Assembly: GCA_964247055.1 (NCBI GenBank) | Contig: OZ176054.1 | Span: 1,612,001 to 1,676,000, forward strand | DNA: 64,000 nucleotides | From: Paragordius varius | Taxonomy: Eukaryota > Animalia > Nematomorpha | Direction: 5' to 3' | Shown: in pieces, positions 40,134 through 55,300 of the stretch | How positions within the stretch are numbered: the stretch's first letter is position 1 | How the letters are laid out: every line of letters begins with the position of its first letter | Translations under genes and position numbers: made by a program | The notes under the pieces: model-generated | What the model was told of the DNA's origin: nothing | The model's input: the letters and a program-made list of their open reading frames with translations, nothing else | Database searches by the model: none

Positions 40134-42677
40134 GGGTCAAATTTTATTGATATTTTGCAAATACCAAATTAAATTTGTTACAACAATTATTTTTTAATTA
40201 TTCAAAGTAGGGGTATTTAATATGTGGCCTTCCGCGACTTATTGCATGGCCCGCCGAAAACCACTGTAAATATTTTTGCAGCAAATCTCTTTTTTTCGAC
40301 TAACCGTAAATTTTTATAGGAATTTTTTATGTTAGGTGGATTTAATTTATATTTAGACGTTTATAACAACTTAAAATGGGCAAGCACCATATCTCAGGAT
40401 TCTGTTAAATTGCTTTCATTGCATATCTTATATATATTATCATATATTTATTTTTATACGCCATCACCTCCAAAGTTGTATTGCTAAAATATTTTTATTT
40501 CAAAGCTAAAAAAATAAATAATAATTAATTTTTATGGCATCCGTTTGTCTTTAACATTGATTAAAGGGCTTCGTGAATAAAAGTTGATTTATCTATTAAT
40601 CACTTAAACAAAGTTTGCTTTGAATATTGGCATATGGCTTAACTTATTTTGTATATTATAACCCAGTAACGGTTAATGACATTTTTTGGTAGTTTTCTTC
40701 CGCAGAGCTTAAAGTATTAAATAAAATTTATTTATCCAGCCCATCCCTCCTGTATTAGACAAAAAACTTATAATATTCACAGTTTATTTACTTCTATAGT
40801 CCCGAATTCGGATAACAAGATTGAAGCTAACAGATGATTTTAAAATTTATATTAAGATTTTGATGGTAAAAATTTTGAAAGCTTTCCAAGGTTACTTCTT
40901 TTTATCCTTATATACATTATTTGCTTGTCGTTTTAACCGTTTAAAATCCAAAAAATATGCATTTTTTTGAAAAAATTGTATCATGGGCCTGAAAGACTAA
41001 AGAAAGGTTATTTTTAAATTTGGCACAAAGCCAAAAATATTCAAGATATTTAAATTAATAAGTTCCTGGGTATATAGTTACCCCAAAATGTCATAAAGTG
41101 ATATATTAATTATTATTTATCACAAATACAAGAATGCTAGAAAGTATAACATTTATTTTAATAGCAGTGATATGAAAAAAAAAAGATTTCTTAAGCCAAA
41201 GAGAGTATTATATTGTATTACAGTAACTTGGTGGGCCTCATTTTTTACAATCACTCTATCAATCATATGTCAGAATATATGTATCTAATATCAATTTTCA
41301 AGTGAAATCGCATGAAATCGCATTGCAAACTTTCCACTTGTATAAAAATTTAAAACAAATATATTTAGTATATCTCTTAAAGTAAACTGCAAATAAGATG
41401 AAACAAAATCGAAAACTTCTTTTTTTAATACATTCTAAGTATATACTCAAATATCTTCAATATCAAAAGATTGTTAATTCGAAAAGCGCATACACATACA
41501 TACCCCTTAAGAAAAAGATTTTGTTACAATGGTAATTAAAAAATTTATTAATATTACACAAAAAAATTAATTGCTCTTGAAATTTAACAATATATACAAA
41601 TAAAAAGATATAAGCGGCTTATCTAAAGACAAAACAAATATACCTACTAGCATATTAATTTACGATCAAAGATTAGATGTTTTAATTTTATCACTTTAAA
41701 CAATAAAAATTTGGTTATCGGATTTGTGATTCTAAATTTGTAAAAAAAAACATCCAATTTAAAATCTCTTAAAATTAAAAAATTTGGAAGGCAAGGCAGA
41801 TATTTTTAAGTTATTAAATAACATATTAAATATCGACACCTATTTTAATTTGTAAAATATATTGGAGTTAATCTGGCTTTAAGCCAGGATTTTGCTATAT
41901 ATATAGTAGATTCTTCATCTTATATTTAAGGAATTTAGGTTATACATATTCTGTTGTGTGCCAAGAATATAGAAATTTAATACGGTGAAACAGAGAGGAC
42001 AATCAGTCTATTAAGACTTATATTATTATATTTTGTTAAAACATTGATATTTTTTTTTATATTATCTTGCTATAAAATAGCAAGCAAGTATTAATTCCAA
42101 ATCAAAAATAAAAATTAGATATATATAAATATGAGCCTTTCTGTATTAAAATTAGTAAGCTTGTTCTGATTTGTAAAAACGTGTTCATTCTAACATTATT
42201 ATATACATTGTTGCATAGTGGTGCACTCCAATAGTAATGTCCATTATATACTGTATTTTTGCTGTTTTTTTTCACAAAAATGAAACATTAATTAATTTTA
42301 ATTAGTTTTATATTTTAAAAAGGTCATTTTTTATAAATCACTGGTCGAGATTTATCCATTGATATAATTAATTTTTTGCAATTAGTTTTTATGAATAGCA
42401 ACAACCTTATAATTTATAAAATTAAAAAAATTCATTATATATATTTTATAAAATAAAATATTTTTGTCATTAGTAAAATTTATAAGCATGGATATAAATT
42501 AAAATAATTACATAATATACTATGAATATTAAAATGGCTTCGCTTGCTTTTTAAGCAGGACAACTACTATATACATATATATACAAAGTCCCCTTATCTA
42601 TTAGGCAAAGGCAAATGAATATATATATTTGTTTATACCTTTTTTCATCCTAAATCACAATATAAAAAAATGATGGC

Positions 42678-42714
<37 letters not shown>

Positions 42715-43346
42715 AAATGTGTCACAACAGTTTAGAAACATTGTACAAATGGATGTGTTTGATTGCAATTGATTTTATATTCCATGAATTATTGTTAAGC
42801 GTCACTAAAACAGAAAGGATGCACAACGATTTTTCTATTACTAGTCCTATTATAATGGGTTATGTGGTCTTAATATATATATTCTTTGCAAAAAGCATCA
42901 TAAAATGTAAAAATTATGGCGATTTATTGATTAAAAATAATAATTCTTTTTTTCTGCAAAAATATATTTTTTTAAGATCAAAAATTAAGGTGCTAACATT
43001 TAGAGAGGGTAAGATTAGACTTTTGTCTTCCTAAAAACTAACTATCATTTTATTACTACCTTTTTTTTCTTCCTTATATCTCCATTAAACTAATAATGAT
43101 TGATAATTTTTTTATTGAGTATTATAAAAATTAAAAATTAATATATCTTCAACAATATCGGATTACCTAATATATGTATACCTGTATCTATCTTCATTCT
43201 TTACCACAAATTGATGACAACATAGATAGACATTCTGTGACATTTTTTTGTACGCGCACACATATAATATATATTTATCAAACTAATATTTTATCAATTT
43301 TTTGAAAAAAAAAATTCCTTTACATACACAAATTATTTGTTAACAA

Positions 43347-44438
43347 ATGCATTCCAACCAAAGTACGTATATGGAATCAAATTATTCGACATATTCCCCC
43401 GTTATGTTATCAAACTATTCCCAAGTTGATCAAATGAGTTATACCCATTACGATTCATCCATCAATACAGTACCTCGTGATAACAACTTTTATACTTCAT
43501 ATCAAAACGAACATTTTACTCATCAAAATGGTACAATTATTATGCCTTTACATACAAACACATTTTTGGATTGCTCAAATTTGGAAGAGGCAAGGATACA
43601 AGAAACCGATTGTAAAATAAATATGGTTGGTGAATCTCAACAAAACTACAAAGCCACCAGATATCGATCTACCTGCCTCAAAACAACAACAAAAACAGCT
43701 ACGTCAACAGTTAAAAGCAGAGTAAAAAACCCTGAATTGTTACAGAAAATAAAACGTGTTCGACGCAAAAAAGCAAACGATCGAGAAAGAAATCGAATGC
43801 ATGGCCTTAATAACGCTATGGAGGCGTTGAGAAATGCTTTACCACAAGAATTAGTTAGATTGGCCACGGCCAATACTACGAATTGCGTTTCAACCAATTG
43901 CGATGAACATATCGTATGTCCAGAGACTTGTAGATATAATAACAATCAGAATTACCATAATCCAAATGGTGGTTTATCCTCTCAAACTATGCAGGATACA
44001 GACTTAAATCATCCACCCTCTCAACCAAAACAACAACTAAGTCCGTTAGAGCGTTTAACACAATGTATTATAACGGAAATCAATTCAAAGCAAATACACT
44101 CACCCTTGTCCAGCAACACATATTACGCATCAGATGCCGAAAATTACTCAAACCACATAAATGGTAATGACACAACTTTCCAACAGAATATCCAAACCAA
44201 AACCAATAACGGTTTAATAACCAGTTTACCACCTTATCATCCTACATGTAACAAATCTCCCGCCAATTCCGTATCATATGATTCAACTTCCTCGTGTTCA
44301 GGGGGTCAATATGGCGAAAATTCTAGCAAACCTGAAGATGCATTTATGCACGGCCCCAAATTAACTAAAATTGAAACTTTACGCTTAGCTTATAATTATA
44401 TTAAAACATTAACCGATATATTACGCAAAAATAGCTAA
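43347..44438 (+). CDS. ngn: Neurogenin/tap-like atonal-superfamily bHLH transcription factor, single exon, 363 aa
   Basis: RRKKANDRERNRMHGLNNAMEALRNALP (basic region + helix 1) and PEDA...KLTKIETLRLAYNYIKTLTDIL (helix 2), in a 1092-nt open frame within very AT-rich DNA. Confidence 0.9.
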   Translation: MHSNQSTYMESNYSTYSPVMLSNYSQVDQMSYTHYDSSINTVPRDNNFYTSYQNEHFTHQNGTIIMPLHTNTFLDCSNLEEARIQETDCKINMVGESQQNYKATRYRSTCLKTTTKTATSTVKSRVKNPELLQKIKRVRRKKANDRERNRMHGLNNAMEALRNALPQELVRLATANTTNCVSTNCDEHIVCPETCRYNNNQNYHNPNGGLSSQTMQDTDLNHPPSQPKQQLSPLERLTQCIITEINSKQIHSPLSSNTYYASDAENYSNHINGNDTTFQQNIQTKTNNGLITSLPPYHPTCNKSPANSVSYDSTSSCSGGQYGENSSKPEDAFMHGPKLTKIETLRLAYNYIKTLTDILRKNS

Positions 44439-46164
44439 ATTATATAATCTAATGTTTATATTTTTAGGTCTACTTATTTTTGTGATTACTTAGTAAAATA
44501 TTTGAATTTATACAATGTGTATTTAATTTATTTATTAAATAAATTTAGCTAAATCTGACCAATTTAATTTCATACTTATATTTTGTCATAAGTTTGACAA
44601 GCTTTTCAGCAATATTTTTCGTGTTAATGAAAAAAAAAGATGTTACAAGGTAAAATCACTCAATAAGATTAAAGTTAAGTACCTAGACTTTAAGGATCCA
44701 AAAATAGGAAAAATAACTTTCGAATTATATAACAATAATATTGTTGAATGGTTGACACTTTAAAAGACACTTGAAATATACTATCAATACTATACTTGTC
44801 AATATTTTACATTTTTTTGCTAAATATTAATCGTATATAACATTTTTTAAGCATTATTCTAGATTAATATAAATTATTGTGCTTAAAAATATGTTGTACT
44901 ATATATAAAGTTTCACTATAAAAAATCTTTTTTATTTAGTGCAAATCGGAAAACGTAAAAGTATTCAATTGGATTTATTTGACTAACTCTTAATATTACT
45001 ACATTAAAATAATGAATAATTCGATTTCTAATTATGTAATCATCCCTTATAAACAATTATAACTATTTAATTTTCGGCTAATGAGTTAAAGTCAAAAGCT
45101 TAATTGTGTGTTTTTAAACGTAATAAATTAATCAGACTTTATGGTATATATATTTTATTTTATTATTAAAGAAAGGTTTACATATAAAAAATAATTAAGA
45201 AGCTTAAATATATAGATGTAATCATCATTATTTTTCGATTTTCATAATTTGCTGATTATGCGCTTACCAGTCAAAAGTTAAAAATAAAATTAATGCAAAT
45301 ATCGATATTTACGTATTTTATTTAAGAAGATTTGTCCAGTTTTCAATTGTTTAAAGTGAAATTTATCAAATCTATATAGGCGAAGTGTGACATTTATGCC
45401 GCCCTGATGTATCTTTTGTTATCTGAAACTTACATCTGTATTTATACGTAATAATTATATTTTATCAAAAAACAACTTTTTTAACAAGAGTAGATTAGAT
45501 TACATAAAAGAGATATATATGTCATACTTTACAATTAGTAATTGACAAGGTGTCAATAGATAAAAAAGATAATTAGTAGTAGCATTGTATTAAATTGGTG
45601 CAAAATTCGAAAAAAATTGAGAATTAAAATTATTAATCCAATTAAAAAATTTGCGCCTTATTTTTCTGCTGATTAAGAATATCATTTAAACGAAATTCAA
45701 CCTTGTGCATTCTAAATTTAACAATGATTAAAAAAAATTCATTCAAAAAACTTAATATTACTCATTTTATGATAAACCTTAATGTAAAAATTTAGTCATT
45801 ATGAAGTTATTAGCTAAATATAAAAATAATGCAAAATAAACCACTCTTTCTGTTTATATCAGAGTTAAAAATGATATAGATATAAAATTAGCTTAAATTT
45901 TAGGTTAGAATCAAATAAACACAATATTTTGCAAAAATATTGTAAAATAAAAATGGCGTCGAAGTAGATTGATATAGTTTTTTTTTAAACTAAATTAAAA
46001 TTTAGCTTTTTAAATAATTTTCATTAGGATAAAAGTATATTAAGAGAAACCGCCCCTTTCTGTTTTTTAAAAATATCAATTTGCACATGGTCTGGATCAC
46101 TAGCTAACCCAATTTAAATAGAAGTGTTAACAATAAACTGTATTCTAAATATAATATATTTTTA

Positions 46165-46250
46165 GGGTGAATTGAATTGTTCGAAGGTGGTTTGAAATGT
46201 TTAAAGGTTAGTTTAAAGTTTTTAAGAGTGTATTAGACCACGAAATGGCA
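46165..46250. repeat. Solo degenerate arm of the 21-bp-array MITE family
   Basis: AGGGTGAATTGAATTGTTCGAAGGTGG... ending AAATGGCATA, resembling the right arm of 38017-38388. Confidence 0.5.
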
Positions 46251-49200
46251 TATTTTGTTTAAAATATAAAAAAAGGCTCTATGTTATCTACAACCACTTT
46301 ATATGTTAATTCAAATATAAGACATTCTTCTAAATTTAAACAATTTTCAGTTATATAAAACGGTTCCGATTTACATACCCTATGGAAAAAATTTAAATTA
46401 GTAAATTTGGTTGTTTTTATCGGCTTGAATAATCGATCGTCGGAATTAATTATCCTTTTACCATGAACCTATCATTATGTAATGTGTTGATACAATGATT
46501 ATTATTATAAAAAATATTGTTGAATACCAAAACCTTTGATTTTTTTCAGATATTATTGTATCCGTTTTACAAATTAAATTAAATATAATTTTTCCGGACA
46601 ATGTAAGACTAAAAATATTAAATACATATAATTTACAATATTAGTGAATATTATAAATTTACCTAAAACAGCTCTTTATGAATAAAGTGTCAAAACATTC
46701 TTTTACACATTAAAAATATTGTCGCAACCAAATTTTGAAGAATTAAACATCAATTTGCAGCATACAAAAACATTTTTATATCATCTCAGATTAAAAACAT
46801 ATACCTTTGTAACAATAAACTTCGAATTTATAAATTCACAAGTCGTAAATAATCAGATTTGAAATAAAATTAAAACTATTTCAAAGAAATTATTTGTATA
46901 TGATTATTTTTTTCTAAAAACTCTTAGTTTTGCACATTATCACCAAACTTCGTTTTCATATATGATATAAAGCTTTTTTATAATTAGTATTTTGCTAAAT
47001 TTTTTATGACGCTTATTACCGAATTGTTTAATAACTTTTTTTTACAAAAATTTAGGAAGCCAGTGTGCAATAGCTAACCGTTTTGTGACAAAAATGCTTT
47101 AGGTAGAGTTTTTACATTTTTAAACCCAGGGCACAAATTCTTATAAAATTATATATTTATAAATAGATTCAATTATAATTGCATTATAAACGCTTTACTT
47201 TATAAATGTCCAAAGTTATCAAAACAAAAGCTTATAAATTGTTTTTGCAATTATGTAGTGCTTTGATTTTAGCCATTTTGATTTAAAGTGTTGCTCAAAA
47301 TCAATTCTAAGTTTATTTTTCTTATGCGCTTCAAAAAATATTTTTATTTAGCTTTTCACAATTTTAAACTGCAAATTTAATTGTTACTTAATAATTCATC
47401 CATAAAACCATATATCAAGAACTGTGCGCTCCTCCGAAGGAAAAACAATGATTTGTGAAACAGGTTTTTAAATTTAGTGGTTTCAATAGGATTGGATCAT
47501 CTATGAAGGAAATGTAACTTGATTAGATTCTGATGGGAGGCATATTGTTTCAAAGTCAAGCTAGAAGATTTTATTACAACAAAGACAAATGTAAAAAGGG
47601 GGGTTACACCTTTATCAGAGAATTTCACCAATGACTATTGTTAAATCATTACCATGGGTTTTAGGAAAAAGTGTTAAAATAAATATTTATCAGCAGAGGT
47701 TAATTTATCACGAAGAGATTGGAACACAGTACAATTAAACTGGCTCGATAGGCGCTTTATAATGTATGAATAGGCCAACCCGTTTCCCGAAAAAAATGAT
47801 TTAAACTTACAATTTAAGACTTGGTTTTGAAAAAAAACATTATTTTACATGGGATTGTTGACGGCATTAAAAATGTAAAACACGTTTTACTACTACGACG
47901 ACAAATAGGTATTAGATCAATTATGTTATCTTTGTCAAAATTGCTAACTGAGTTATTATTCCCTGCATATTTTATTGATGGTTAATATACTATCTCCGGC
48001 CCAATCCATTGCGTAAAAAGTATAAACTCTACATTTGTTTTCCAGATTAGTTAAAATAAAGATGCTATAGATTTCACGAACCCAAATGTGGATTTATTTG
48101 TTAAGAGTTTCTTAAGTTTCCGCTCCTCTTTCATGACTAAAAAAATAAAAAATACTTGAATTGTGTTTGGTAGTAGAGTTCATCCAAAAATGGCACATGT
48201 ATTCGTAAAAAAATAAATTGTATTAATCAAATACCTGCCTGTCTTTTTACACTGTATAATAATTGAATATGATTAATCCTAAATATATGAAAAAGAGCAA
48301 AATTATTGCTACATACAAATGAGATGTGATTTACTCTAATTATTTATAATATGATATATATCCATTATTACATTCACAGAATATTAATTTATGGTTGGCC
48401 ACAATATTTTGAAACGTATAATAGCAAAACAAAAATATTTGTTGAACTTAACTGTTGCGTTTTAACAAAAACTTAATATTAATAATCAAAACAATATGGA
48501 TTTAAAATGATGTATTTGAATTGTGTGCCTCTGATGGTTAATTTTTGATTTAGATTTTATCCCGTTTTGTCAAAGCTCACGGACAAAATCATCTCTTAGA
48601 ATTATATTTGAATGATTAAACATTCAACCACAACCATAACCATATATTATTTATTAAGAATTAGTGGAAATGAAAAAAAAATGGATAATACTATCTGATC
48701 ACTCATCTATCATTAGGTTTTAACCAAAGGGAGGGAAATCATTTAATTGAATTGATTAAAAAATAAAAATCATAAGTCTAAAATCAAAACCAACACTTTT
48801 AAGGAATAGGGATTTACCATAAAAATGTTAGTGGAGATAATCCTACAGATTATTAATAAAATGTTACGTTTGTGAAATTGTATGGTATATTAAATCCAAG
48901 TAAATATATATTCTTACTATTATACTTTGTTTTCTAAATTTCAATACATGTTTTTTAATTTTTTACTTAAACCAATATTTTCAATACATATATTATTAAT
49001 TGGATTAGCAGATTAAGAATTCTTCCTACTATTAGCAAAAGTTGATTGTCCAAATCTATAAAGCAATGAAGTTTGATGGTTTTAAAACTATCTAATCAAT
49101 GAATCCAATATTTTTTAGAAAAGGCCGGGATCCATTTTTTTAAGTTATTGGTATATGACATTTATTATAATTATTTAAAGATAGTGTGATAATAATTGTT

Positions 49201-49335: not shown

Positions 49336-52300
49336 TTATGTTTTTCTTCTATTTATTGAGCTTTTAACACTGTTTAAGCCATTGATGAAAGGCTTGAGTT
49401 TGGACCAAATTACATTGAGCATTTCCTTGAAACTAGATCTGAATTGTTCGCTCATAGTACAATAAACTATGAAGTTAATAGAGCTATTTATAAGTGCCAT
49501 AGTGTCCATTAAATCACCTAAAGGACTGTAAACCATGTTAAAAAAGGGTTGTCCCAACAAATCCTTGATACACAGTAAGGCAAGGAGCCCACTAGGAAAT
49601 TCAGTTACCAGGAAACACAATAAAACAGTGAGCAAAAGTTGGGATGTTTTATCGCCTCGGTATCTACGCCTCGGGACTCTCCGCGAAAGATTAAGGTTAA
49701 GATTTTGTATGGCAACATTTGGGTTATTAGTTAAAGGAACAGCTCCTTCTTCGTTTCTTGATGCGAGTGAACCTGTGATACCTTTGTCGTGATGGCTATT
49801 GATTGCGTTTGTGTTTTGTAAAAGTAAAGTGCTTACTTTATTACGGGCTCGCTGATAAATTGAACGGTCAATCCTAACAGGGGGTATCGAAGGATGATCA
49901 TAAGAGACTGTTTTGATCATATTTGGAATATTTGACTGTTGATTTATAAAAATTGTTTTAGCAGCTGTTTTGCTGCCAATATCAATATTTTGTAGTTCTT
50001 CATGTTTTTCCCCATCTTCAACCTCATTGGGTGAAGAAGAAAGAAGTTGGGCTGTATTTAATACAAGAGATGATTTTCGTTTATAGTTGTGTGCCTTGTC
50101 TGCTATTGCTTTTGAGGAAGAGTATCTTACCTTTGGATAACCTGCTAATACAAAAGAAGTATGGTGATTTTTAGCCGTAGACATTCGTCTTTCATTTTTA
50201 TGGTTTGGACTTTTGACTAGAAATATCCGTTTGAACCAATTGTTGCCACCATTTAAATTGGTTGAAATAATTTTATTGTTCGGTTCAGCTAGGGAGGATG
50301 ATCGTTTTATCCATCCATTTATGACTACCTTATTATCCAGAGCGTTACTATAATCATTGTTCAAAAACATGAGTGAATTTTTATCACGTGAAACCTCCTC
50401 ATTAGATTTATTAAATTGTTCTTCTGCTATTTCTTTGGTATCATCATCAATGTCATCTGCCTCGGGTATGATTTGATAATAGCTCGAAGGATCCGGTGGT
50501 ATATATTTGGCTTGTTTAAAATTGGTGTATGGTACATACTCGTTCACGATATCATTACCACTGTCCCTGTACAAATTTTGGAAACCTTTGAATAGGGATG
50601 TCGCCTTATTCTTATTCCTAAGGCTGATAGATGATTTTTTATGTCCAATCTTGTATGTTCCATGATTACCCCTCCCCCAATCACCAAATATCTGCAGGGG
50701 GAACTTATAATGTGTCCTTTCACCATATTTTTTACGTTTCCTTTGTGCAGGACAATTCTCTTCTATCGTCGTTAACAATTCGGCTTCGTCAATTGTGTTT
50801 AGGGTTTCTCGCCCACTGTAAAAGGTGGCGGCTGTACTTCTCTTTTTATCCAAGCTATTTGTTGGACCTAACATCATTAGAGAAGAAGAATTCGGTGGAC
50901 CCATTTGTGGTCTGCTTGTGCCAATGTTAGCTCCTCCAATTTTTAATTTTTGATGGCGATAATTTGCACGGCAAATCACGTAGATGAGAAAGGCTGACAT
51001 AATGGTTAACATTAGACATGGTAGGAGTTTACCAATTACACTAATCATATATAATACAAAATAAATGTAAGGTAAAAATTTTTTGGCATGTATTATATAG
51101 TTTTAAATTTTGCAAAACTTAAAACTTTTTATTTTTAGCTCATCGAATTTTCGATCTTCAACACTGTCTCATTTAACCTTTTTCATTTGACAAGAATTAT
51201 TATTCAACATCAGTTGTAAAAGCATATCACATCCTTCCACCCCAATGTATGTTCTTAGGAAAATATGCTCTTACATTTTTAAAAAATACTTATATGCCGT
51301 TGATAAAATAATTTCTTCCAACTTATTATAAAATTTGTTTTCCTCTAATAATTGAGAAATCATTTTATGTAGGTTTGATTAATCTGACATTTAAAGCTAA
51401 TCTGTAATTTTAACCGAAATTGAACGCAAAAGTAATAAGCTTAATTAAAATTGAACTATAATAAAAACCGTAAAATACATGCTAATTCGATAATATACAA
51501 TTTGAGTAAGTACACATTGCAAATTTTTGATTAAATATTGTCCAGATAGTATATACACCACACGCATTAATATTGGCTACAATAGTAAAGAGTGAGGAAA
51601 TAAACTTTAAGCCAATAACATTACCCTTTTCTGAATATGCTATCCGGCACTAATAAATGCGAAAAAAATAGCAATGCAAACTTATTCAAAATGTATTTTG
51701 CCAAAATGACATTAACACTACGATTCAAATTGGGGTATCTAAATACCCCAGACTAAATTTAAATTAAAATTTTTAAAAAACTACTGAAGGAAACGGTCCC
51801 AATTTAAATTTATGCTTCTATCCTGATAAATATTAGATGAATATGCCAAAATATATTGATTAAATTTTGTTTTGAAAAAAAAGTTCCAACTCAAACTACT
51901 TCAACGCCATTTATATTTTGCAAAAATTTTGCAAAATATCGTTTTCATTTAATTTTAAGGGTAAACTAAAGCTTATTTTTTATATAAATTACATCAAACA
52001 TTGATAGAAATAGAAATAGCGGTATATTTTGTATTATTTTTAATTTTACAATTTGACATATGTCACGTTGACTAAATTTTTACCTTTCAGTTTTAGTTCA
52101 AAATAAGTAATTTCAAGTATTTTTGAATAAAATTTTTTATATATTTCTGTTTATTAATGTTATATAAGTGCAAAATTTTGCCATGGTTTTGATTGCTTCC
52201 ATACTTTTTAAAGTATTTGATTTTAAACAGGCCTGGGGTATCCAACTACCCCAATTTGAATCGAAGGACTAAAATGAGTGTGTTGCATCCAAGTGTTAAC

Positions 52301-55300
52301 CGTAAAGAAAAAGAATGCGCAAATATTTCATACATATGTACACTCTTTACTGTAAATGCTATCCGACATTAATTAGTGCGAAAAATTAGCATTGTATTTT
52401 TAATTACAATGCTGTAAAAAATATATTTTGATATACCTGTACATGATGAAATTCATTTGGTGGAGATTTGCATGTTTTGCATTTGTAGAAGTGATATATA
52501 AAATAGAAGGTTTAGGAATCATTCGTAATTCCCTAAGCATGGTTGTTGTTTGTATGGGAAAACTACTATTAGTTTCATTATTGTATATGATTTTAGTTTC
52601 TACCTGATCCTTAATTAAACTATGGACAGTGCTTGTTCTTCCTACTGTTTGCGTGTCAAGTCCCGTTAAATCAAATACTGATCGAGAATTTTTCATTTTA
52701 ATTGAAGCATTTTGATAAAAACTAATATTCTTGTATGCGGTTAACCTACTTGTCCATTGTGTTTTATTTAGATTGAATTTAAAACCGTTGGTAGTATTAT
52801 CATTAGCAAAGGTTTGATAAAATTTGTTGGCATTTTTTAAGAGTGTTTTTGGACCAGGATCGTAGGGTATGATGGTGTAACTCAGGTAATAGGGTAAACA
52901 ACACAAACTCACACAAACGTATATAGTGACTAAGCAAAGTGCAGTTGTACGATTGTCAAAATAACGTTTTCGGAGTGTCGGTTGAGACAAGGACAAACAT
53001 CGAAAGGCGGCCAGAAACACGGTTACCCAAGTTGAAATGGTGTGAGCCAACATGGTTAGATTGAAATGAAAGAGGATGAAATAGGCCCAAGCATGGGAAT
53101 GTAGGTTTCCCTTGACCATGGGTATGTACATGTAGGAAGCAAAAATTAAATAACTCATCATAACAAGTATGTCGGCAACCGCAATACCTAAATATCAATG
53201 ATATAATTGATTTAATTGTGTAATTATATGATCAAATTCTACATATATAATAAATTATATAGTTATTATTTATCTGGAACAGGGCTTCCTTAACTATGGG
53301 TCGCGACCCCATTTGGGGTCGCCTAGCAAAATTATGGAAAATGTTTTTTAACTTGTAAAATTATTGTTATAAAGAAAAATAACAATAATCGTAGATAAAT
53401 ATATTCTGAAAAAGTATTTATATTAGATCCGATCATTATAATCTATATATTTATAAAAATGGAAAATGCTGGCTTTGTGATCTGTTTCCGGAAAACCGGT
53501 AGACCCATTCAAATCCCAAATGTCAAATAAATATTATCATTAATGAATGCCCCGACAATAGCCCTTTTTTTGAATTAGGCTCCCAGTTCGGGCCCACCCC
53601 GTGTAAAAACGGTTTTTTTTGAAAACAGAAGTCCAGAAAAATCTTGTCTTTGAGACAATTTTACGGTAAACGTGTTGTACCTTTCGATTTTAAATGTGAT
53701 TATTTTACTTTTTTTCGATTACGCCGAACCTAGTCGGCTCTTTTTTAATTTAGGCTCTCTCTTTACCCGTTTCCCCGTAAAATCTCATTTTTTTAAAAAA
53801 AAACTAAATAATTTTTTCCCCAGGGTATGAGACCGTTAAAATTCACTGAGGATTCGAGTTATTTTCTGTTAAAAGGCAAAATTTTAGTCTAGCGTTTTTT
53901 TAATAATGGTCGTTAGGTAAATAGATAGCCGCTAAAACTGCGCCACTATATAAAAATTGCGTTGTTTTGGAGCCAATTTACAGAAATTTATGAAGCCATA
54001 TGAGCTTATTAAAAGCTCGAAATATTACCCGTAACTAGGTAAAAATTAAGGTCGGTTTTTTATTAGCCGTTATACCATTTTTCATGCAAAAACATCATTT
54101 TTTCAAGCAAACGCACCATTTTTTCAAGCAAAGGCAACAATTTTTCAAGCAAAGGCAACAATTTTTCAAGCAAATGCAACATTTTTTCAAGCAAAGACAA
54201 CATTTTTTCAAGCAAACGCAACATTTTTTCAACCAAACGCAACATTTTTTCAACCAAATACAACATTTTTTCATCCAAACGCAACATTTTTTCAACCAAA
54301 GACAACATTTTTTCAAGCAAAAACAACACTTTTTTTAATATTACAAAGAATTATTATTTATTGTTAATTATAAATTATTTATTAAATTTTAAGTAAATGT
54401 AATTTATTTTTAGCGTTGAATTATGATTTTTATCGTTTTATCATCAATATTGGATGGTAAAATTGATTTTCAAACATTTTGAATTTGCCCATAAATTGCC
54501 TTATTTATTTATATTAATTATATTTATCTTTTACAATTTTGGTTTCGCCTAATCAAATTATTTATTTTGCACTTCAACAGTGTCCTTGAACACTTCAAGT
54601 TGGTCCTTGAACATTTCCAGTTGGTCCTTGAACTCTTTAAATGGTCCTTAAAATATATAATTTTTGTTTTACCCTAATTTTTGCAAATGAAAATTTTTTA
54701 ATAACCCAGAAAACTCATATATTTTTTTCGTGTTATAAATATCTAAAATTATTTTAAGAAATTAATATACGGTTTGTCAAAGATTAAAAGATGATATCGA
54801 TTTAAAATTAATGTTAAATAATAGAAAATAGGTTAAAAACAATAAATTAGATAAATTATTTTCGATTTAATTAATAAAAGTTAAAAACAAAAAAGTCAAA
54901 GGACCAACTTGAAGTGAAGGACAACTTTAAACTTTTAAAGACACTGTTGAAGTGCAAATTAAATAATTTGATTAGGCGAAACCAAAATTGTAAAAGAAAA
55001 ATATAATTAATATAAATAAATAAGGCAATTTATGGGCAAATTCAAAATGTTTGAAAATCAATTTTACCATCAAATATTGATGATAAAACGATAAAAATCA
55101 TAATTCAACGCTAAAAATAAATTACATTTACTTAAAATTTAATAAATAATTTATAGTTAACAATAAATAATAATTCTTTGTAATATTAAAAAAAGTGTTG
55201 TTTTTACTTGAAAAAATGTTGTCTTTGGTTGAAAAAATGTTGCGTTTGGATGAAAAAATGTTGTATTTGGTTGAAAAAATGTTGCGTTTGCTTGAAAAAA

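Follow-up and report, generated by a model that had tools for sequence, protein, structure and literature searches.

Basic helix-loop-helix (bHLH) domains comprise about 60 residues and have a loop of variable length (PMC1828162), and a loop of 15 residues has already been termed 'extended' in Mlx (PMC3177325). What is to be made of a hairworm ORF that exhibits both halves of such a domain with 171 residues between them? Is it a transcription factor with a giant loop, a gene carrying an intron in frame, a decaying copy, or the product of a rearrangement in which the helices have changed their places? The question is raised by positions 43347-44438 (+) of the window (the whole stretch of 64,000 nucleotides of Paragordius varius DNA that was analysed), which an earlier note had read as a neurogenin-like bHLH gene split by a loop of about 171 residues.

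Family assignment

The locus consists of an uninterrupted ORF of 363 codons plus a stop codon, in a single exon. Only five other ORFs reach 110 aa between the 30 and 60 kb marks of the window, and its GC content (0.30-0.39) stands out from both flanks, which are very AT-rich (0.20-0.24). The Pfam search with the ORF confidently identified the HLH family (PF00010; E=3.6e-13, 49.5 bits at a curated cut-off of 20.7), with the match divided into two stretches, the best of which relates aa 139-166 to profile positions 1-28 of 53; this result refutes the suggestion that profile searches may miss a bHLH domain split in this manner. The basic region and helix 1 occupy aa 139-166 and helix 2 occupies aa 338-361, and owing to the 171 residues between them the domain spans 223 residues, compared to the usual size of about 60. 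The same two-piece arrangement was obtained in the alignment with the only solved structure found by sequence, NeuroD1 from the E47/NeuroD1-DNA crystal (PDB 2QL2 chain B, E=1.8e-9): residues 139-166 correspond to residues 2-29 of the chain and residues 336-361 to residues 34-59, the helices align residue for residue, and the aligned pieces are separated by about 4-6 residues in NeuroD1, in contrast to 171 in the window protein. NeuroD1 differs also in the sequences ANARER and KLSK, which are replaced by ANDRER and KLTK in the window protein. Thus, the ORF, the two-stretch Pfam match and the two-piece NeuroD1 alignment bear out the description of a neurogenin-like bHLH domain split by a loop of about 171 residues.

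Conservation is concentrated in two segments. The former (aa 122-166; 43710-43844) comprises a conserved N-flank (VKSRVKNPELLQKIK) followed by the basic region and helix 1, with the invariant columns between R139 and P166, while the latter is the helix 2 segment (aa 338-363, KLTKIETLRLAYNYIKTLTDILRKNS; 44358-44435), with the invariant columns between K338 and L359. All 37 residues that are invariant in the six-sequence alignment, distributed over the basic region, helix 1 and helix 2, are kept in the window protein. The E-box-contacting pattern RxxxNxRERxR with its central Glu is present, and R139, R140, K142, A143, N144, D145, R146, E147, R148, N149 and R150 are identical in five relatives and aligned to NeuroD1 (2QL2_B). 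The N-terminal region (aa 1-121; 43347-43709) is polar and of low complexity, and is predicted to be disordered.

The word-index search, restricted to proteins of 200-635 aa, revealed 410 matches, the named ones being almost all neurogenin-1/-2/-3, tap and NEUROG1. The window protein carries the family signature KANDRERNRMH...KLTKIETLR, and the ANDRE signature is common to it and to 244 of the 261 retrieved relatives. With neurogenin-1/-3 and tap as the best named matches, the neurogenin-type identity proposed from reading the DNA is well founded. The exact-protein look-up found no database record identical to the window protein, and the phmmer search against a library of 1.84 billion cluster representatives gave no matches at E<=1e-30, i.e. 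no near-identical protein or fragment. We regard it as likely that the gene is a single-exon orthologue of neurogenin/tap (group A bHLH, Atonal superfamily), whose HLH loop has grown to 171 translated residues. Judging from its sequence, the gene is real and probably functional, and we rate it as an architectural variant, specific to its lineage, within a known type of factor, and not as a factor of a new kind.

Content and coding character of the loop

The expanded loop (aa 167-337; 43845-44357) is rich in N/S/T/Q/P, with 73 of its 171 residues being N, S, T or Q. The canonical short loop LPTFPxDxKLTK, a family-typical trait rather than a formal defining feature, is absent from the window protein, in which only the LP and a displaced PEDA are left of it. 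The PEDA (aa 329-332; 44331-44342) is located five residues ahead of KLTK and corresponds to a remnant of the canonical loop (LPTFPEDAKLTK) seen in relatives. The four cysteines C180, C185, C191 and C195 form a C-x4-C-x5-C-x3-C cluster (aa 180-195; 43884-43931). Sequence reading therefore confirmed the Cys cluster, the N/S/T/Q richness and the PEDA remnant before helix 2, all of which had been pointed out previously. A zinc-binding module was considered for the cysteines and rejected: the cluster is unconserved in the protein from Gordionus described below and falls into a region of low AlphaFold2 confidence (pLDDT <50), hence it is probably incidental. TRF detected no tandem repeat in the ORF, the Pfam search with the loop alone returned no match, and the ESM Atlas feature search with the loop gave values of 0.80-0.81, below the meaningful level.

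The loop looks like coding sequence, and not like an intron or a product of decay, because its composition, its open frame, its polymorphism and the probable orthologue in Gordionus agree. Its GC content (0.37-0.39) is similar to that of the rest of the ORF, compared to about 0.22 for the non-coding DNA in this region (introns and intergenic sequences). There are no in-frame stops in the loop, versus 8-16 stops in each of the other five frames, and 171 stop-free codons would arise with a probability of about 3.5e-5 given the base composition of the loop itself, and of 2.7e-8 given that of the intergenic DNA. The composition at the individual codon positions mirrors that of the N-terminal coding part, e.g. 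with C at 0.31 in position 2 and G at 0.09-0.11 in position 3. Among the 13 differences listed between the haplotypes in the loop, seven are synonymous (expected: 21-28%, p = 0.009-0.04), and the differences listed for the two halves of the bHLH domain comprise one synonymous change in helix 1 with its flank and none in helix 2. On the basis of the GC content, the open frame, the codon-position composition and the excess of synonymous changes, we conclude that the giant loop is very probably translated.

A probable orthologue in Gordionus

The best database relative by far is the 'uncharacterized protein LOC135927072' (P0001, 410 aa) from Gordionus sp. m RMFG-2023. It exhibits 70% identity to the window protein over aa 122-178 (the N-flank, the basic region, helix 1 and the beginning of the loop) and an identical KLTKIETLRLAYNYI in helix 2, and like the window protein it is encoded by one ORF (L001:4001-5233), flanked by AT-rich DNA, in which the long loop occupies the same place. 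No second neurogenin of Gordionus was found among the best 120 matches, and this protein is a probable orthologue of the window gene. A comparison with orthologues from related taxa had been suggested as a check on the giant loop, and the Gordionus protein also possesses one, 121 residues long and in the same place. Its 121 codons are free of stops (P ~1e-3 at their own composition) and their GC content is exon-like (0.45-0.48, versus about 0.19 in the flanks).

The two loops differ in length (121 versus 171 residues) and exhibit no significant sequence similarity: the loop-to-loop alignment was not significant when compared to shuffled sequences (local z=-1.0, global z=1.9), and neither was the alignment of the two N-termini. 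The Gordionus protein differs also in that it has no Cys cluster (its single loop Cys is located near the C-terminal end of the loop) and no PEDA remnant, and in that its N-terminus is longer. We read the window species and Gordionus as two deeply diverged nematomorphs, and the long loop as a trait that is common to their lineage and evolves fast.

Loop length among relatives

As a proxy of the loop length, the number of residues between RERNRM and KLTK (the spacing) was used. It equals 186 in the window protein and 136 in Gordionus; of the 119 other word-search matches, 118 have a spacing of 20-22. The phmmer search against the 1.84 billion cluster representatives yielded 599 matches, and 137 further proteins were measured among the matches listed. 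A spacing of 20-22 was found in 128 of them, and one more (P0243) also has the canonical loop, which had been overlooked by the pattern; seven exhibit spacings of 24, 27, 34, 36, 44, 47 and 62, and one match is a compositional artefact. Taken over about 255 other best relatives, the canonical loop is present in about 97%, and in the remainder the loop is at most about 41 residues longer. Modest growth of the loop is thus sporadic, and the hairworm loops exceed all others that were retrieved three-fold. The statement that this loop is extreme for its family holds with respect to the spacing (186 versus 20-22), with the amendment that moderate lengthening, by 3 to about 41 extra residues, occurs sporadically among the relatives. 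Literature searches on long bHLH loops and on hairworm neurogenin yielded no description of such a case.

Predicted structure

The AlphaFold2 run carried out for the monomer with the six-sequence alignment predicted two confident helices, aa 129-164 (pLDDT 86-94) and aa 341-361 (pLDDT about 91), which cover most of the two halves of the bHLH domain. The regions with pLDDT below 50 comprise aa 1-117, 179-224 and 251-327, including 123 of the 171 loop residues; hence, the idea that the loop could be a disordered module agrees with the model, in which it is mostly predicted to be disordered. Within the loop, a putative amphipathic helix (aa 233-251, LSPLERLTQCIITEINSKQ; 44043-44099) was predicted weakly (pLDDT 63-70), and the model of the Gordionus protein, which is similar overall, exhibits a helix in the middle of its loop as well, at residues 306-343 (pLDDT 48-62), but the two models share the alignment and are not independent. 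Helix 1 was not seen packed on helix 2 in the monomer models. A Foldseek search against the PDB gave no match for the model, and the wide VIA-align search matched only single long helices (Z <=4.9).

A 44-sequence alignment made by MAFFT placed the canonical helix 2 (LTKIETLRFAHNY) on the loop segment IVCPETCRYNNNQ (aa 189-203; 43911-43955), with the match running through ET.R. This resemblance is weak and probably due to chance, and the misaligned alignment was left out of the folding.

The missing C-terminal tail

Both hairworm proteins terminate almost directly after helix 2, with 2 residues left in the window protein and 10 in Gordionus. The 119 other word-search matches possess 61-328 residues in this region (median 74), in a comparison set whose length filter (200-635 aa) biases it against short-tailed proteins. 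Sixteen neurogenin-like relatives (within P0005-P0240) end in the motif SP.E[FYH]SDTS[DE]G[YF].[YF]E[MI][FIY]P, in short SDTS[DE]GY.YE, which is absent from both hairworm proteins. A looser form of this C-terminal motif was observed in the sea spider Pycnogonum. The C-terminal tail of vertebrate neurogenin serves as an activation and phospho-regulated region (PMC4422318).

Sequencing runs, haplotypes and genomic neighborhood

Among five sequencing runs that contain the locus, four were examined; their coverage is as even over the intergenic DNA as over the gene, and they are therefore DNA runs. In five presumed RNA runs with the same species label none of the gene's words were found. The DNA runs revealed two haplotypes over 41500-46500, with one sample heterozygous and another homozygous for the alternative haplotype; the divergence between the two is about 2.5% in the loop and larger in the intergenic DNA. 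The alternative haplotype was seen also, at low depth, in a run labelled as a different organism. This pattern may mean that the species is very polymorphic or that some runs are mislabelled. In the N-terminal region (43330-43592), the alternative-haplotype contig from run X3 has 251 letters for 263 positions, i.e. a net shortening by 12 nt (4 codons); part of it is recorded as a gap of 1 nt at 43528, and the net change preserves the frame.

Two other features of the neighborhood were recorded. An extremely high-copy element is located 1.3 kb downstream of the gene (45675-46342, with the peak at 45842-46008), with a summed contig depth in the DNA runs of about 0.9-1.4 million versus 300-700 nearby and with numerous variant joints and loose ends; probably, it represents a satellite or an abundant short interspersed repeat of this genome. 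Farther away, two ORFs on the minus strand match the Pfam family 7TM_GPCR_Srw, one at 49336-51048 (E=4.9e-11, profile positions 236-317) and the other at 52400-53161 (E=2.8e-4, profile positions 70-152), and they are probably exons of one gene for an Srw-like chemoreceptor or peptide receptor.

Alternative explanations

Could most or all of the insert be removed as a spliced in-frame intron or an 'exitron', leaving a much shorter loop in the mature protein? The claim that no phase-compatible GT-AG pair would remove the insert turned out to be wrong, as 18 in-frame GT/GC-AG pairs within the loop would excise 300-453 nt (e.g. from GT 43854 to AG 44186). In-frame GT-AG pairs of many sizes, including those of 18-36 nt, are present in the ORF, so partial in-frame removal is possible. 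However, 18 is the number of pairs expected by chance from the 42 donor and 22 acceptor dinucleotides, none of them gives back the canonical short loop, and the best ones leave from 20 to about 60 foreign residues and depend on weak GC or poor GT donors. The exon-like GC content argues against an intron as well, the long open frame and the excess of synonymous changes would be unexpected of one, and the Gordionus orthologue keeps an independent open frame of 121 codons at the same place; we therefore consider splicing of the insert very unlikely. A decaying or non-functional copy (a pseudogene or an unconstrained paralogue), in which the loop would be tolerated junk, could account for a loop and an N-terminus that are unalignable with Gordionus, for the absence of the C-terminal tail and for the lack of the gene's words in the five presumed RNA runs. 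Such a copy would hardly be expected to have all 37 invariant residues intact, the DNA-contacting basic region included, nor to keep its full ORF open in two deeply diverged species; moreover, the best 120 matches include no second Gordionus neurogenin, and few of the listed haplotype differences fall into the two halves of the bHLH domain, which makes decay highly improbable.

A further possibility is that the loop consists of the old helix 2 and the old tail, a segment of loop and helix 2 having been copied to the C-terminus by duplication and the first helix 2 having decayed. Such a duplication would account at once for the giant loop and for the lack of a tail. It is in line with the lack of a tail in both hairworm proteins (2 and 10 aa, versus at least 61 aa in the others), with the length of the loops (121-171 aa), which is close to that of helix 2 plus a typical tail, with the placement of the canonical helix 2 on loop residues 189-202 by MAFFT via ET.R, and with the position of PEDA directly before the working helix 2. 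On the other hand, the best of the loop-restricted phmmer domains (E=0.13) falls on an N-terminal region, with no significant match to a tail or to helix 2, an HMM of the SDTS[DE]GY.YE motif built from the 16 relatives matches neither hairworm loop, and the tail comparison carries the bias of its 200-635 aa filter. We give this rearrangement only a slight chance, about the same as that of the intron.

Proposed explanation and significance

We favor the reading in which the insert is a translated loop of a functional neurogenin, and it is best understood as a polar stretch, for the most part disordered and under weak constraint, such as accumulates in AT-rich genomes. A single expansion in the hairworm lineage, located between the conserved LP and the remnant PEDA, would have given rise to the loop, which would afterwards have drifted, weakly constrained, in much the same way as the N-terminal region. 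By analogy to the solved bHLH complexes, and given the residues that are conserved, the window protein would still be able to pair with an E-protein (of the Daughterless/HLH-2 type) and to bind E-boxes. The loop would lie outside the parallel four-helix bundle and would need only to span the distance from where helix 1 ends to where helix 2 begins, acting mostly as a disordered polar tether; according to a rough polymer estimate, closing about 170 residues may cost a few kcal/mol of folding stability. The Thr residue of KLTK, which is a phospho-switch site of proneural factors, is kept in the window protein.

The C-terminal tail of vertebrate neurogenins is a region of activation and phospho-regulation. 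As the hairworm proteins lack this tail, short elements for docking or activation that normally reside in it may be carried by the loop, and the predicted mid-loop amphipathic helix is a speculative candidate for them. Or perhaps the tail of the hairworm neurogenin has been functionally replaced by a module within the loop (the disordered tether plus the amphipathic helix), with cofactor docking or phospho-regulation exerted from inside the dimerisation domain, possibly as a result of the relocation of helix 2 to the C-terminus? We find this replacement unlikely, although it deserves somewhat more credit than the duplication or the intron; if true, its architecture would be one that no bHLH factor has been described to have.

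The loop of a bHLH domain is commonly regarded as a short linker, and a loop of 121-171 residues in a protein with no tail represents a natural experiment on how much length the HLH fold tolerates, with all DNA-contact and dimer-core residues kept. It raises the question whether regulatory regions can sit inside a dimerisation domain. For the Nematomorpha, a phylum that has received little study, it provides a marker in the form of a shared derived gene architecture. It is also a warning for annotation: gene finders may wrongly remove such an insert as an intron, and aligners misplace helix 2. If the loop is only a neutral, AT-driven expansion, it is a curiosity of limited reach.

Comparison with known systems

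The closest known system is the neurogenin family itself (NEUROG1-3, Drosophila tap and C. elegans ngn-1), with which the window protein shares the sequence RRxKANDRERNRMHxLNxAxxxLRxxLP ... KLTKIETLRxAxNYI as well as the conserved N-flank KNPxLLxKxKR, and from which it differs in a loop of 171 residues versus about 8. Moderately lengthened loops are found in the proteins of Paragonimus kellicotti (KAF6778497.1, spacing 47) and Tyrophagus putrescentiae (KAH9389791.1, spacing 34); these two and the unnamed Logan/ENA proteins of the Atonal superfamily resemble the hairworm proteins in having extra polar residues between LP and K[LM][ST]K, but their spacings (24-62, i.e. from 3 to about 41 extra residues) contrast with 136 and 186 in the hairworms.

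A parallel outside the family is provided by the Asn/Ser-rich low-complexity inserts found inside conserved domains in very AT-rich genomes, such as those of Plasmodium and Dictyostelium. The genomic setting is alike (the flanks of the window gene have about 22% GC), and so is the type of insert: an N/S/T/Q-rich, fast-evolving, predicted-disordered and length-tolerant surface loop. The hairworm insert differs from them in that it is neither a homopolymer nor a tandem repeat, and in that its position is conserved across two hairworm lineages.
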